The notes under the pieces: model-generated
Told to the model about the DNA's origin: nothing
Databases searched by the model: none
The model's input: only the letters and a program-made list of their open reading frames with translations
Position numbers and translations under genes: made by a program
Shown here: in pieces, positions 31,573 to 44,915 of the stretch
How positions within the stretch are numbered: the first letter of the stretch is position 1
Layout: every line of letters starts with the position of its first letter
IMG/VR virus record: IMGVR_UViG_3300017991_000048
Span: 248,001 to 312,000 of that record
Direction: 5' to 3' (one strand)
DNA length: 64,000 nucleotides

Positions 31573-32472
31573 CTAACCCCCAAGCAATGCTACAAACTTG
31601 TCTATGCACTGTTCCATCGAGTACCGGCTCTCAACCCACTCCCGACACCACGCAGGATCTTTAGGCTCAATCACCCTCAACTCCTGAAACGTATTCCAAA
31701 GGCATTCCTTGGGCCATATCTGATCTGCTCCAGGCCAAGCATGAATAAGAGGTGTTAGCCCCATTGCCATAGCTTCCGCAATTCCCATACCGAAGCTCTC
31801 GGTCACACTGGTAGACAGGAGAAAACGCTTGCCCTTCAGAAACTCCTGAGTCTGAACCCAACCGTGGTATGTAACATTTGGCAGTTCTAAGTCCTTGAGA
31901 TACCACCCGACCTGTTCATCCTGAATGGTCCCTCCGACATGAAATTGCCTCTCTGGCATTGAGGCCCAAACCGTGCGTAATAAAGTCGGACCTTTTTTCT
32001 TATTCAGGTATCCAACATAAGCAATAAGATTGCTGTCCAGGCTAGCTTCGTCTTGAAGTTGATACTTATCGAGATCGACGCCATTTGGGATGAGATGAAT
32101 TCTTAGGGTTGGATGTTTAAAAAGCTTACCCCTCACAATTTCTCTGAACCTTGGAGACACAACCACGAGATCCGATACGTTACCCCAAGTTATACGTCTC
32201 AGATACTCAGTCTGAGCCTCATACCCGTGTAACCGGATAACAACCTTGGGTCTTTTTTGGAGTTCCCCCAAGCGAGCAGTTATAACTCTTGCGTTATCAT
32301 CACAAAAATCTATAAATATCACATCAGGAGCCAAATCAACGACTTGCTGCCACGCATTATTGGTATAGACATACGACGTTTTGGTGATCTCCCAGTCCGA
32401 AAGTCGCTCCTTCAGGTAAGGGACCAGCGAAAAGCTGTCGGCAACCTGAGCTATAAACAGCTTCATTTCCAC
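31573..32472 (-). CDS. GT-B (GT4-like) glycosyltransferase
   Basis: IHLIPNGVDLDKY, YVGYLNKKKG, ESFGMGIAEAMAMG (Ex7E). Confidence 0.88.
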   Translation of the reverse strand: MEMKLFIAQVADSFSLVPYLKERLSDWEITKTSYVYTNNAWQQVVDLAPDVIFIDFCDDNARVITARLGELQKRPKVVIRLHGYEAQTEYLRRITWGNVSDLVVVSPRFREIVRGKLFKHPTLRIHLIPNGVDLDKYQLQDEASLDSNLIAYVGYLNKKKGPTLLRTVWASMPERQFHVGGTIQDEQVGWYLKDLELPNVTYHGWVQTQEFLKGKRFLLSTSVTESFGMGIAEAMAMGLTPLIHAWPGADQIWPKECLWNTFQELRVIEPKDPAWCREWVESRYSMEQCIDKFVALLGG

Positions 32473-32978
32473 CCCATGATATGCCGTCGGCCCTCTCTGC
32501 TGGTTATCATAACGCTGTTCTCAAAGTCTACAGGGGTCCACTGTGAGAGGTGCTCTTCATGCTTGTTCCCATGAGACGCTTGTTGCCCACTCCAATATGC
32601 GGGGGTTGAGACAAGGTAATGTTTTTTGACGGAACCTAATAATTTCAAGCCGTCCTCACGACTCAAATGCTCAATGACATCCACGAGCAAAATCAGATCA
32701 TACCTCTCAAATATAGGCAGTACCTCCATGACATTACTGTAATAAATTTTATCGTAAACAGCATGGAGAGGGGATTTATAATCTTCGAAAACTTCTACGC
32801 CATCTACTACGGGCGTAATATTCTTCCAGTACTTTAGATACTCAATACACAGTGCGCCCCATTTACCATAGCCTACGCCAATGTCCAGGATAGTTTCAGG
32901 GCACATCTCCATCACTTTGTAAACAAGCTCAGGGATCACATCCGGTCTACAACTGGGCATCTTGTGCCCTCCTTCCAT
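32463..32978 (-). CDS. Class I SAM-dependent methyltransferase
   Basis: ILDIGVGYGKWG motif I, DVIEHL; likely start MPSC at 32960. Confidence 0.8.
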   Translation of the reverse strand: MEGGHKMPSCRPDVIPELVYKVMEMCPETILDIGVGYGKWGALCIEYLKYWKNITPVVDGVEVFEDYKSPLHAVYDKIYYSNVMEVLPIFERYDLILLVDVIEHLSREDGLKLLGSVKKHYLVSTPAYWSGQQASHGNKHEEHLSQWTPVDFENSVMITSREGRRHIMGWK

Positions 32979-41100: not shown

Positions 41101-44100
41101 CCGAAAACAAGGGTATCATTACTGTCATCAGAATGAATATTGCCGCCGGGTAAAACAGTCGCGTCGTTCTTTCTAATGCGACCTCTGTACGCGCCCTCAG
41201 CAGCGGAGTTGACCGGCATCCAGTAAGTAATTCTGTAAAGACCATCGGCTTTAATATCAACTCGGTCAGTATCAACGTTATCGTGTTCTATTATGGACGG
41301 TTCGGTTTCAATATCCGTGGTGTCAAAAGTTATGTCCGTCCAGGAATTAGTGAACGTATAATTCGTAGTCCTTCTAATCTGTAGAGCCGCTAACGTCGCA
41401 CCGGCTTCTGCGCCCGTTGCTCCGGTGTTTCCGGTCGGACCGGTCGCTCCTGTAGCCCCGGTCGGACCTGTATTTCCCGTGTTCCCGGTATTTCCGGTCG
41501 GTCCGGTCGCACCTGTCGCTCCGGTGTTTCCGGTGGCACCAGTGGGTCCGGTTGAACCGGTTGCGCCTGTGTTTCCTGTCGCCCCTCTTAGCCTAACAAC
41601 AGTTAGAACAATATCTGTCTCTGCTGTCTCAACAGACGCGGCATCTTTCTCAAGCTGTAAAGTTAAGAAGTCGCCAGCCGATAACTCCGCTAAAAAGTTG
41701 ATGCCGAAACGAAGGGTGTCATCAGGCGTATAAGAATGAATCAGACTACCATCCAAAACAGTGGCGTCGTTCTTCCTGACTCGTCCCCTGAACTCTCCTT
41801 CAGCCTGAGAATCTACAGGCATCCAATACGTAATTCTGTAAAGGCCGTCAGACTTTATATCCACCCGATCGGTGCTTACATTATTATGCTCTATTACGGA
41901 CGGGGCAGTCTCAATGTCTGTTGTGTCAAAAGTTATATCCGCCCAGGAATTAGTGAACGTGTAGTTAGTAGTTCTTCTGATTTGCAACGCGGCTAATGTC
42001 GCACCGGCATCCGCACCTGTGGCTCCGGTCGGCCCGGTATTTCCGGTCGGACCTGTGGGTCCGGTGTTTCCGGTAGCCCCTGTATTACCAGTGTTTCCTG
42101 TCGGACCGGTGTTGCCCGTATTCCCTGTGCCGCCAGTAGGACCGGTGTTGCCCGTATTCCCTGTCGAGCCGGTAGCGCCTGTGTTGCCTGTGTTTCCTGT
42201 AGCTCCGGTGCTTCCCGTTGGGCCGGTTGCTCCCACTCCGGTGTTGCCCGTGGGACCCGTAGCGCCTGTAGCGCCTGTATTTCCGATCGGCCCTGTTCCA
42301 CCCGTGTTTCCGGTTGCACCTGTGGCTCCGGTACTTCCTGTCGGGCCGGTGTTGCCTGTATTTCCGGTCGGACCTGTACTGCCTGTATTTCCGGTTGCTC
42401 CTGTCGCTCCGGTCGGACCCGTTGGACCAGGAGTTGTAGCTCCGGTCGCTCCAGTGTTACCCGTATTTCCGGTCGGTCCGGTAGCCCCCGTTGGTCCCGT
42501 TGGACCTGGGGTAGTGGCTCCGGTCGCTCCAGTGTTGCCTGTATTTCCGGTCGCTCCTGTTGGGCCGGTTGCACCGGTCGGGCCTGGAGTTGTAGGACCG
42601 GTGGCTCCTGTATTTCCAGTTGGCCCTGTAGGCCCAGTATTTCCGGTTGCTCCAGTCGGTCCCGCCGTAGTAGGTCCGGTCGCTCCGGTCGGACCCGTTG
42701 GTCCTTGAGGTGCAAACCCTAAACCAGTTTCTACAAAGCTTACAAGGGTGCCACCGCTCGATAAATAGTTTACATCATAAGTATGATAAGCTCCGCTGTC
42801 AGTTGCGCCGGTTACCTCGTAAGTTACAAAACCCTGAACACCATCGGTTCTGAAAACCCTAATGTGATCCCCAATAGAAATCTCATCTAGTGTTAGATCA
42901 ATATTAGCGCCATCTTTATCGATGTCACTGGCGTAAACTTTGGTGGCAAGAGCGGGATTAGCATTATCCAGTCTAATAAAGCCGCTGCCGGGAGGTGGCG
43001 TTGTGGTAGTGGAAAATTGATAAACTAGAGTCCAACCTCCCACAACACCCGTTGGTCCTGTCGGGCCGGTTGCGCCGGTTGCACCTACTCCAGTCGCTCC
43101 GGTGGCCCCGGTAGGCCCGGTAGCCCCTGTTGCACCTGTGGCTCCGGTACTTCCTGTCGCTCCGGTCGGTCCAGCAGTTGTTGGGCCTGTGGCTCCCGTG
43201 TTTCCGGTTGGGCCGGTGGCTCCGGTTGGACCTGTAGCACCCGTAGGGCCTGGAGTTGTTGGACCTGTAGCTCCCGTGTTTCCGGTTGGACCTGTGACTC
43301 CCGTTGCTCCAGTTGCCCCTGTAACTCCAAACCCGGTTGGACCCGTAGCCCCGGTTGGACCTGTGTTGCCGGTGTTTCCAGTCGCACCCGTAGCCCCGGT
43401 TGCTCCGGTTGGACCTGGAGTTGTTGGACCGGTAGGTCCAGTATCCCCTGTCACTCCGGTTGGTCCGGTATTTCCTGTCGCCCCTGTCGCTCCGGTGTTC
43501 CCGGTCGGGCCAGTATTCCCGGTGGCTCCGGTCGGGCCAGTATTCCCGGTGGCTCCGGTGTTCCCGGTATTGCCTGTCGGTCCGGTATTCCCGGTTGGGC
43601 CTGTCGGTCCCGTTGCCCCTGTCGCGCCCACAGTTGCACCAGTAGGACCTGTGGCTCCGGTGCTTCCCGTTGGACCTTGTGGTGCAAACCCTAGACCGAC
43701 ACCTCCATGGTTTACAAAACTACCGCCGCTCGAAAGGTAGTTTACATCGTAAGTATGATAGGCTCCGCTATCGGTAGCTGCGGTAACTTCATAAGTGGCA
43801 AACCCCTGAATTCCATCGGTCCTAAAAACTCTAATATGATCGCCAGCAGATATCTCATCTAATGTTAGATCAATGTTTGCGCCGTCTCTGTCAATGTCGC
43901 TGGCGTAAACCCTAGTAGCCAGAGCAGGATTGGCGTTGTTTAACCTTAGGTAACCGCTGGCAGGAGGTGGAGTTGTTGTTGTGGAAAACTGGTAGACCAT
44001 CGTCCAACCACCCACAACACCTGTGGGACCGGTCGGCCCTGTTGGTCCCGTATCTCCTGCTCCGGTCGGGCCGGTTGGTCCGATCGGGCCGGTTGCGCCT

Positions 44101-44915
44101 GTGTCACCCGTGGGACCGGTTGCGCCTGTGGGACCGGGGGTTGTGGCTCCAGTCGGTCCGGTGTTACCAGTATTTCCGGTTGCCCCTGTTGGACCTGTAG
44201 GTCCGGTTGGACCGGGGGTTGTGGCTCCAGTCGGTCCGGTGTTACCAGTTGGGCCTGTTGCGCCTATTCCAGTAGGACCGGTTGCGCCTGTATTTCCAGT
44301 CGGTCCGGTGTTACCAGTATTACCCGTAGAGCCAGTATTGCCCGTTCCAGTTGGACCGGTGGCTCCTGTAGCCCCTGTGTTTCCGGTGCTGCCAGTCGGC
44401 CCAGTATTGCCCGTGGCTCCCGTTGGGCCAAGACCACCTGTTGCTCCCGTTGGTCCGGTATTTCCGGTGTCCCCTGTACTTCCAGTCGGACCTATCGGGC
44501 CGGTAGCGCCCGTGCTGCCTGTGGCTCCGGTGTTTCCTGTTGGTCCAGTTGAGCCGGTAGCCCCGGTGCTTCCTGTGGCTCCGGTGTTTCCTTGAAGTCC
44601 GATAGGGCCGGTGGCTCCGGTGTTCCCGGTACTGCCTGTATTACCCGTTGGTCCGATCGGGCCGGTTGCTCCCGTAGCACCTGTGTTTCCGGTTGCGCCT
44701 GTGTTGCCAGTAGCGCCTGTTGCTCCTGTAGCGCCTGTGTTACCCGTGTTGCCGGTATTACCTGTTGGACCTGTATTACCCGTTCCAGCAGGTCCGGTAC
44801 CACCCGTGTTGCCGGTCGGTCCGGTCGGTCCCGTTGGTCCGGTAGCGCCAAAGCCAGTCGAACCAGTAGGCCCGGTAGCGCCAGTTCCACCAAGTAGTTG
44901 GTTAACCCGATACAC
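38112..44915 (-). CDS. 2267-aa collagen-like (Gly-X-Thr) fibre protein with six internal globular domains and a C-terminal tip
   Basis: Long [12 protein letters not shown] triplet runs; three copies of VVGGWT..YQFST...GLGFAP; three copies of LAA(L/V)..RRTTN...(C1q/TNF-like); tip [18 protein letters not shown]...TVKVQW. Confidence 0.92.
38960..44900 (-). repeat. Collagen Gly-X-Thr 9-nt periodic repeats
   Basis: Interrupted tandem GGN-NNN-ACN codon repeats between the globular domains. Confidence 0.9.

Follow-up and report, generated by a model that had tools for sequence, protein, structure and literature searches.

A putative glycosylation operon headed by a giant threonine-rich collagen-like fiber gene in a jumbo phage genome

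The IMG/VR record IMGVR_UViG_3300017991_000048 is a complete jumbo phage genome of 398,071 bp with direct terminal repeats, and the window analyzed here is the stretch of 64,000 nucleotides formed by its bases 248,001-312,000 (positions below refer to the window unless genome positions are specified). Nearly all long open reading frames (ORFs) of the window are carried by the minus strand, among them eight closely packed genes between positions 44915 and 31573, with a gene for a giant threonine-rich collagen-like fiber protein first and a GT4-type glycosyltransferase (GT) gene last. We consider it likely, from the predicted functions and arrangement of these genes, that the block encodes a system similar to that of the Clostridioides difficile enzyme SgtA and that this phage system O-glycosylates the threonine residues of the fiber in the cytoplasm; Thr-rich viral collagen fibers would then probably be sugar-coated. 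The phage comes from aquatic sediment, and near-identical DNA is present in sediment and seawater metagenomes. Megablast comparison of the region with 50,697 phage records gave no match, and the phage has no cultured close relative among the deposited genomes. The block is composed of the following genes, in which TPR denotes tetratricopeptide repeats and SAM denotes S-adenosylmethionine.

38112..44915, minus strand: giant collagen-like fiber gene, 2267 aa (Pfam Collagen, E 8.9e-144), with orthologs in the relatives L010, L012, and L013
37525..38112, minus strand: 195-aa protein, coupled translationally to the collagen gene, without family match
36503..37525, minus strand: 340-aa protein (486 aa in the relative L013), without family match
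34829..36484, minus strand: 551-aa GT2-GT2-TPR glycosyltransferase (Pfam, two GT2 domains and TPR)
33555..34829, minus strand: 424-aa sulfotransferase-like/SAM-methyltransferase fusion (Methyltransf_23/25/11, E 4e-11; Sulfotransfer_1, E 0.003)
32947..33564, minus strand: 205-aa SAM-dependent methyltransferase (Methyltransf_11, 26.1 bits against a cut-off of 21.2)
32463..32978, minus strand: 171-aa protein, possible methyltransferase with a weak match (Methyltransf_23, E 1.1e-3, below cut-off)
31573..32472, minus strand: 299-aa GT4-type (GT-B) glycosyltransferase (Glyco_trans_1_4, 3.9e-10; Glycos_transf_1, 5.9e-10)

Every gene named at this locus by the initial annotation, which was made from the sequence alone, is present on the minus strand at the positions given there. 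The layout is that of a putative single, translationally coupled operon, since neighboring starts and stops overlap or are at most 18 nt apart from the collagen gene through the GT4 gene; a gap of 275 nt after the latter ends the packed block. No hydrophobic stretch of transmembrane length was found in any of the eight proteins, which fits a cytoplasmic placement of the enzymes.

The fiber protein contains 443 Gly-X-Y triplets (counted in runs of at least 4), and in 401 of them the Y position is occupied by Thr. The X position is most often Ala (152), Pro (118), Asn (95), or Ser (47). Pro occurs at Y only twice, and only 6 of the 886 X and Y positions are charged. The helical part comprises approximately 1329 residues in 28 runs and is broken by seven globular domains. 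The rise of a collagen triple helix is 0.286 nm per residue, so the 1329 residues correspond to a predicted triple helix of about 380 nm. The globular domains belong to three types (three of type A, three of type B, and a single C-terminal domain C), the internal repeat copies being 69-83% identical and the domains being kept in relatives.

43677..44003, minus strand: domain A1 (aa 305-413), internal repeat without family match
42705-43031, minus strand: domain A2, copy of A1
39774-40133, minus strand: domain A3, copy of A1
41586-42008, minus strand: knob domain B1, paralog of B3
40983-41405, minus strand: knob domain B2, paralog of B3
38541..38966, minus strand: knob domain B3 (aa 1984-2125), modeled with AlphaFold2 (AF2) at a mean predicted local distance difference test (pLDDT) score of 86
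38115-38495, minus strand: C-terminal domain C

The predicted fold of domain B is a TNF/C1q-like jelly roll. The best Foldseek matches of its model (query TM-score, TMq, 0.62-0.77) are BxpB of B. anthracis, ExsFA of B. cereus, and the C-terminal domain of F-BclA, and they also include tail-fiber domains of cyanophages, a spike knob of a staphylococcal phage, C1q, and TNF ligands. The similarity of the C-terminal domain C to the knob-B profile was not significant in hhalign. Thus, two characteristic features of BclA-type fibers, a long Gly-X-Thr repeat and, by prediction of domain B, a TNF/C1q-like trimerizing knob, are found in the phage protein. The third, an N-terminal anchor domain, is missing, because just eight residues precede the first triplet; the phage fiber may be anchored through a knob or through a partner protein instead.

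Knob types are shuffled in the relatives, and others are added. Several contigs of these relatives stop inside the collagen gene, which points to assembly trouble. In the phage itself, the gene (window 39000..44950) is tiled by six exact contig pieces of even depth (~40) from the probable source run, none of them spanning it. For its exact length and the order of its repeats, the gene as given here rests on the assembler, as no independent contig spans it. Identical pieces of low depth occur in three other sediment or seawater runs, placing the phage in several samples, and an independently assembled relative of 416 kb encodes a 2217-aa ortholog with a closely similar domain order and one extra, unrelated globular domain. 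A small collagen-like protein of 264 aa with Gly-X-Thr/Pro repeats is encoded near the genome start (genome 5700-10900, locus L016), where it adjoins a polysaccharide pyruvyl transferase and a GDP-mannose-4,6-dehydratase-like enzyme; it may represent a second glycosylated fiber.

The two genes between the collagen and GT genes had been labeled fiber-associated, a label that sequence comparisons did not support. Neither the 195-aa nor the 340-aa protein has a match in Pfam or PHROG, and neither bears detectable similarity to the collagen knobs (for the 195-aa protein, the hhalign comparison with the knob-B profile was not significant). The single NCBIfam match of the 195-aa protein, a choice-of-anchor J domain (E 0.0023), is below threshold. 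The two proteins share an N-terminal domain of ~80 aa (41% identity over 85 aa), and the synteny of their genes is preserved in all relatives. Neighbors of the 195-aa protein in the ESM Atlas are viral and yielded only weak leads (TNF-like lectin and GpJ C-terminal domains), as did the low-confidence ESM Atlas model of the 340-aa protein.

The central enzyme of the block is the 551-aa GT. Its N-terminal GT2 domain (~36050-36388) has GalT1/WrtF as phmmer matches in the Protein Data Bank (PDB), whereas its C-terminal part (34832-35722, aa 255-551) forms a module of a second GT2 domain and a TPR region. The catalytic domain of the module is of the GT-A fold (Pfam Glycos_transf_2, E 1.1e-27), with the motifs DTGS at 291 and DAD at 340-342, both invariant in 23 homologs; a TPR-like helical domain directly follows it, as evidenced by several TPR Pfam matches at aa 435-524 and by helices 174-285 in the model. 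This AF2 model, obtained from the 23 homologs, has a pLDDT of 94.8. Only a few homologs of the 551-aa protein are full-length relatives (50-70% identity), whereas hundreds of others match residues 255-551 only; the conserved unit is the module of ~290 aa, which elsewhere is fused to a methyltransferase, an LmbE-type deacetylase, or further GT domains. The phage genome contains a single copy of this SgtA-like module.

Protein-glycosylating enzymes are the closest characterized relatives of the module in both sequence and fold. Its phmmer matches in the PDB are GmaR (2.8e-23), SunS (1.8e-15), and ThuS (1.9e-12), and in Foldseek the model matches SunS and ThuS over its whole length (E 4e-18 to 2e-16, TMq 0.61-0.68, ~291-323 columns), the next match, TarS, being ten orders of magnitude worse (4e-8). 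Among the Swiss-Prot models, SunS is second (1.5e-17) after Synpcc7942_0270. The latter was considered as a pilin O-GlcNAc (N-acetylglucosamine) transferase and rejected, as it is an uncharacterized cyanobacterial TPR protein and the published cyanobacterial enzyme is Synpcc7942_0051, a member of GT41. The best NCBIfam model of the module is the SunS family, although the module is predicted to be a relative of SunS rather than an ortholog, because its score (65.7 bits) is far below the equivalog cut-off (350 bits). All of these characterized close relatives glycosylate protein or peptide side chains directly, and the sequence kinship to GmaR, SunS, and ThuS together with the SunS/ThuS fold match bears out the assignment of the GT2-TPR enzyme to the protein-glycosylating type. 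When the module was modeled in complex with a Gly-X-Thr stretch of 36 residues, the score was 0.00 and the pLDDT of the partner 26, values that speak neither for nor against the peptide as acceptor. At its N-terminus, ahead of the first GT2 domain, the 551-aa enzyme opens with a strongly basic, Lys-rich tail, KKKTKKKAPVRAKKPKSK (36400..36484, minus strand), and its true start may be an ATG three codons downstream of the TTG.

The gene order of collagen, 195-aa protein, 340-aa protein, and GT2-GT2 enzyme is kept in four independent relatives, with GTs 66-70% identical to that of the phage; in all five genomes the collagen gene lies upstream with two genes intervening, so that the GT gene is a close neighbor of its putative acceptor gene. 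A search of viral contigs with the single 551-aa sequence found nothing, whereas an alignment-based scan of IMG/VR identified at least 535 contigs that encode the module. The best 80 of these (34-69% identical) were taken with flanks of up to 10 kb, in which an ORF was counted as collagen-like if it had at least 15 triplets. As a neutral control, 119 viral loci were picked via a random 14-mer, with a total length of 1.10 Mb (test set, 1.08 Mb).

Co-occurrence of the GT with collagen genes across phages, which the initial annotation had proposed as a check, was positive. A collagen-like ORF was found within 10 kb of the module in 47 of the 80 loci and in none of the 119 control loci (Fisher p 3e-24). 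Nearly all of these ORFs are on the same strand as the module, and they are mostly located directly upstream of the GT gene, often ending within 15 nt of its start. When the GTs were merged at 70% identity, 34 of the 46 clusters had a collagen ORF, 31 of them within 3.5 kb, and the proportion was 20/25 where each flank was 5 kb or longer. The composition of the collagens varies together with the presence of the enzyme. In the reciprocal test, 118 viral collagen-like genes were sampled by a degenerate GGN-N7 pattern; the median share of Thr at Y is 70% in 42 GT-linked collagens and 15% in these 118 random viral collagens (Mann-Whitney p 3e-12).

Within the 46 de-duplicated loci, 77 genes located just downstream of the module were inspected, and methyltransferases were the most frequent identifiable family, followed by further collagens, PIG-L/LmbE deacetylases, a GT11, and a rhamnosyl transferase. 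On a phage contig of ~35 kb, the genes for collagen, the GT module, and a methyltransferase are inserted between the major head and head-closure genes. Similar arrangements are present in bacteria. In species-representative genomes, GT-A+TPR proteins of Clostridia (340-361 aa) are 27-28% identical to the module (E ~1e-21), and their genes are located directly downstream of Thr-rich collagen ORFs in Sinanaerobacter, Sedimentibacter, Anaerovoracaceae, and several metagenome-assembled genomes (MAGs) of Bacillota.

The remaining genes of the block are predicted to encode accessory enzymes of glycan synthesis, which were annotated as a sulfotransferase-methyltransferase fusion, two methyltransferases, and a GT4. 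The SAM-dependent half of the fusion is clear and the 205-aa methyltransferase is solid, whereas the 171-aa protein and the Pfam sulfotransferase match are weak. The C-terminal half of the 424-aa protein is a class I SAM-methyltransferase. Its N-terminal Sulfotransfer_1 match (E 0.003) is below the Pfam cut-off, but both motifs for binding 3'-phosphoadenosine-5'-phosphosulfate (HKRSGTHLL and YIVRHPIDTLMSFW) are present, and a stand-alone ortholog (L017:4562-5170) matches Sulfotransfer_1 above the cut-off (E 9.9e-6). The 205-aa methyltransferase has a weak NCBIfam match to a methylase associated with pseudaminic acid. Orthologs of the 171-aa protein (165-166 aa) occur in L010 and L012, as does the GT4 gene, which is missing from L013. 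Thus, the accessory enzymes differ even among close relatives, one of which has an extra GT2 and another a methyltransferase only and no GT4; such variation would be expected of a glycan under diversifying pressure.

A second glycan cluster is located ~95 kb from the operon, outside the window (genome 182300-191600, locus L015). It encodes RmlD (Pfam E 1.5e-86), which is ~60-62% identical to its best taxonomically named matches in MAGs of several bacterial phyla, as well as RmlC (5.8e-16) and an RmlB-like dehydratase or epimerase. The cluster further includes a Sulfotransfer_4 protein, a GSCFA protein, a radical-SAM/SPASM protein, a methyltransferase, and two GT2 proteins, namely, a double GT2 of 684 aa and a GT2 of 259 aa. 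The four-enzyme pathway of dTDP-L-rhamnose is incomplete, as no RmlA-type NTP_transferase was found in the whole genome, and dTDP-glucose would therefore come from the host. A GDP-mannose-dehydratase-like enzyme and a pyruvyl transferase are encoded near the genome start, beside the small collagen-like protein described above.

The stability of the fiber is a separate argument for its modification. Hydroxyproline and Lys-Gly-Asp/Glu salt bridges have been proposed as general clamps of collagen folding, and (Gly-Pro-Thr)10 stays a random coil without galactosylation of its Thr residues (PMC11923368). Gly-X-Thr triplets are unusually common in bacterial as well as viral collagen-like proteins. 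A 2025 analysis described Thr triplets as anomalously frequent in the viral ones and stated that it is not known if and when their Thr becomes glycosylated (PMC11923368). No P4H-type (prolyl 4-hydroxylase) oxygenase (PF13640) was found in the phage genome. The argument that the fiber must do without hydroxyproline holds, given this result, the two Pro residues at Y, and the 6/886 charged positions. Neither hydroxyproline nor the Lys-Gly-Asp/Glu clamps can operate in a nearly uncharged helix with almost no Pro at Y and no P4H, and the lack of hydroxyproline at Y and of nearly all salt bridges makes glycosylated Thr the likely stabilizer.

Based on these data, we propose that the block 44915..31573 is one late operon for a long, trimeric fiber of beads-on-a-string type and the cytoplasmic enzymes of its O-glycosylation. 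The GT-A+TPR module would attach the first sugar to Y-position Thr, using a nucleotide sugar and a divalent metal bound at the DAD motif, while the chain, unfolded or still folding, is probably gripped by the TPR part. Lengthening of the glycan would fall to the N-terminal GT2 domain and the GT4, and its decoration to the methyltransferases and the sulfotransferase domain. A rhamnose-type dTDP-6-deoxyhexose would be supplied by the second cluster from dTDP-glucose of the host. Glycosyl-Thr would stabilize the helix of ~380 nm, and the glycan coat would form the outer surface of the fiber. Our reading of the acceptor and the sugar, of the sequence of steps, of the location in the virion, and of the biological role is inferred. 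A broader proposal, namely, that phages widely carry a dedicated SgtA-like GT-A+TPR enzyme for Y-position Thr of collagen-like fibers and that glycosyl-Thr is a viral substitute for hydroxyproline needed for Gly-X-Thr folding, is put forward tentatively.

Several observations weigh against a glycosylated fiber and are given here with the alternatives on which they bear. The 80 loci were taken as the best-scoring relatives and do not sample the family at random, and related phages do not count as independent observations. Twelve of the 46 clusters have no collagen ORF in their flanks, many of them on short contigs. In some distant relatives the module lies beside capsid-like, portal, or terminase genes with no collagen ORF nearby (one of these has collagen genes elsewhere in its 44-kb genome), and in L078 (genome G003, 44 kb, 94% complete) it is part of a 573-aa fusion beside capsid-like genes, with no collagen gene at all. 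As this genome keeps the module without a collagen gene, the family is not exclusive to collagen and evidently also has acceptors other than collagen. Retention of the cluster by relatives without a Thr-rich fiber, which the initial annotation had named as grounds for refuting its proposal, is thus touched in part, by one distant relative that is 94% complete.

The enzymes of the block might accordingly glycosylate another virion protein (capsid, decoration, or tail), the collagen gene being a mere neighbor. Glycosylation of capsid and tail-tube proteins is established in mycobacteriophages (Freeman et al., 2023, as summarized in PMC12619734), and the genomes just described are of the kind that this explanation predicts. 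It is nonetheless rather unlikely for the present locus, since collagen ORFs adjoin the GT in most loci and in none of the random ones, Thr at Y co-varies with GT presence, and SgtA acts on Thr of collagen repeats (PMC7157674). The module family is best described as putative O-glycosyltransferases of phage structural proteins, with Thr-rich collagen-like proteins as the commonest partner.

The module was found in only 3 of the 22 Thr-rich collagen loci of the reciprocal sample, compared with 2 of the 96 Thr-poor ones (p 0.04), so that many Thr-rich collagens have no module gene in the DNA available. This scarcity, together with the great variation of the accessory enzymes (GT4 present or absent; an extra GT2, LmbE, or GT11), is what would be seen if the fiber were unglycosylated and GT and methyltransferase genes simply piled up near fiber genes as in a hot spot of accessory genes. 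We regard such a hot spot as unlikely, because the module is kept beside collagen genes across phages with 34-47% identity and in Clostridia, start and stop codons overlap within the block, and Thr at Y co-varies with the GT.

Another possibility is that the cluster remodels envelope glycans of the host (lipopolysaccharide [LPS] core, O-antigen, teichoic acid, or capsule), e.g., to block superinfection or re-adsorption of progeny. The GT-A core of the module also resembles the LPS-core GT2 enzymes WaaE/KdtX (E 1e-13, Swiss-Prot models) and, in Foldseek, the teichoic-acid GTs TarS/TarP/RmlT; its homologs are labeled 'beta-1,4-glycosyltransferase' or 'LOS glucosyltransferase' in public phage records; and the genome contains rml genes, a pyruvyl transferase, and more GT2s. 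However, peptide and protein GTs that share the TPR domain match far better than any others, the block has no membrane segments, flippase, polymerase, or undecaprenyl-phosphate-linked enzymes, and the link to Thr-rich collagens would go unexplained, all of which makes envelope remodeling quite improbable. Modification of phage DNA (glycosylated hydroxymethyl-pyrimidines) against restriction is highly improbable: although the role most commonly given to phage GTs in textbooks is DNA glycosylation (PMC12619734) and a DNA methylase is encoded 10 kb upstream of the block, none of the eight proteins matches a DNA glucosyl- or arabinosyltransferase in Pfam or NCBIfam, the module has a TPR protein-binding domain and matches protein GTs, the block (the part of the genome searched for them) contains no hydroxymethylase or kinase partners, and it is placed among structural genes.

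O-glycosylation of fiber Thr is favored over these alternatives because of the enzyme type, the operon structure, the linkage to collagen genes, and the co-variation of Thr at Y. The interpretation of the initial annotation, a glycosylated fiber, is supported in part by these four points and is weakened by the GT family being not exclusive to collagen. Stabilization of the helix, masking of the virion, and adhesion, the three roles suggested there for the glycans, would be candidate functions. The module, present in at least 535 viral contigs, is a concrete candidate for the enzyme of viral Thr-collagen glycosylation. If the broader proposal is true, phage fibers would carry a programmable sugar coat, which in this jumbo phage would be a methylated and sulfated glycan at ~400 sites per chain on a fiber of ~0.4 micrometers. 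Its confirmation would extend phage protein glycosylation from mycobacteriophage capsids to the fibers of many aquatic phages, explain how viral collagens without hydroxyproline fold, and correct the two database labels quoted above. There is also interest in recombinant Gly-X-Thr collagens as biomaterials, which could be stabilized by a matching GT.

The surroundings of the block contain two genes of a known fiber family.

28063..28449, minus strand: Gp80-family paralog (podophage GP4 fiber I protein; Pfam PF23140, E 3e-38)
25876..26259, minus strand: Gp80-family paralog (podophage GP4 fiber I protein; Pfam PF23140, E 5.5e-41)

These paralogs, located 3-6 kb downstream of the block amid genes for DUF5659 and DUF5661 proteins in an arrangement kept in all relatives, show that predicted virion fiber genes sit just downstream of it. 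Ten neighboring proteins had no match in PHROGs, and a tblastn search of phages with a conserved 370-aa neighbor found nothing.

Other features of the window and the genome were noted in passing. A 356-aa actin-like protein of the Volactin family (10033..11103, minus strand; full-length match to PF25216, E 6.7e-72) is encoded next to large, tail-like proteins containing DUF2460. An archaeal host, which this match raised as a possibility, finds no support in the bacterial-type Rml enzymes or in the tRNA set. The latter comprises 42 tRNA genes identified by ARAGORN (genome 92617-92693 and 355975-387773, outside the window), most of them in one array; it includes three tRNA-Thr and two tRNA-Gly genes, and one tRNA was called with a four-base anticodon (tccg). 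An 877-aa protein (12664..15297, minus strand) is split by a Hint/intein domain with a remnant of a LAGLIDADG homing endonuclease, and a GT2-TPR homolog from elsewhere (P0031, 859 aa) also bears an intein. Of two further minus-strand genes, one (55426..57720) encodes a 764-aa protein that combines an N6/N4 DNA methylase domain with a CGNR zinc finger, and the other (288..1712) a CCA-adding/poly(A) polymerase with an HD domain.

The closest known counterpart of the phage system is that of C. difficile, in which SgtA has its GT-A domain at aa 1-260 and four TPRs directly after it (aa 262-358), is encoded next to bclA3, and in vitro transfers beta-O-GlcNAc onto Thr of collagen-repeat peptides of BclA3 in the presence of UDP-GlcNAc and Mn2+ (PMC7157674). 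The phage module, compared with SgtA by published description, has the same succession of GT-A and TPR and is likewise encoded beside a Gly-X-Thr collagen gene. In contrast to SgtA/BclA3, the system is phage-encoded, has a second GT2 domain fused to the module, and continues with methyltransferases, a sulfotransferase, and a GT4, while the collagen is ~2267 aa long and has seven knobs; the identity of the module to the clostridial homologs is only 27-31%. GmaR, the flagellin O-GlcNAc transferase of Listeria, and SunS/ThuS, the S-glycosyltransferases of glycocins, also join a TPR-like helical domain to GT-A and use a UDP-sugar to modify side chains of proteins or peptides directly. Their acceptors are different (Ser/Thr of flagellin or Cys of a small peptide), GmaR is an anti-repressor as well, and the identity of the module to SunS/ThuS in fold alignments is only 21-25%.

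The nap fibers formed by Bacillus BclA resemble the phage fiber in their Gly-X-Thr helix and TNF/C1q-like knobs, the latter predicted in the phage. BclA has one C-terminal knob and an N-terminal anchor domain, whereas the phage fiber has seven knobs and essentially no N-terminal domain. The O-glycans of BclA are based on rhamnose and capped by a 2-O-methylated sugar (PMC6222408, PMC6947953), a parallel to the RmlB/C/D-like enzymes and methyltransferases of the phage. In the cuticle collagen of Riftia, galactose on Y-position Thr replaces hydroxyproline (PMC11923368), a counterpart of the glycosyl-Thr proposed here for the phage, although this is an extracellular collagen of an animal with enzymes that are unrelated or unknown.

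The full-text literature, subscription journals being outside its coverage, contained no report tying phage collagen-like genes to GT-A+TPR enzymes. The paper on jumbo 'moraphages' was considered as a prior description and set aside, as its genomes reach 307 kb at most and collagen is not mentioned in it. Mycobacteriophage glycosylation differs from the present system in having capsid and tail-tube acceptors and no collagen-like fiber. The work of Freeman and colleagues reportedly concerned Che8, Corndog, and Myrna, in which GTs and methyltransferases are encoded within the structural region and the acceptors are subunits of the capsid and the tail tube, modified at their C-termini. According to a summary of that study, GTs encoded by these phages coat virion proteins with O-glycans (Freeman et al., 2023, in PMC12619734). 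The system described here would extend both the collagen glycosylation known from SgtA/BclA3 and the virion glycosylation of the mycobacteriophage type.

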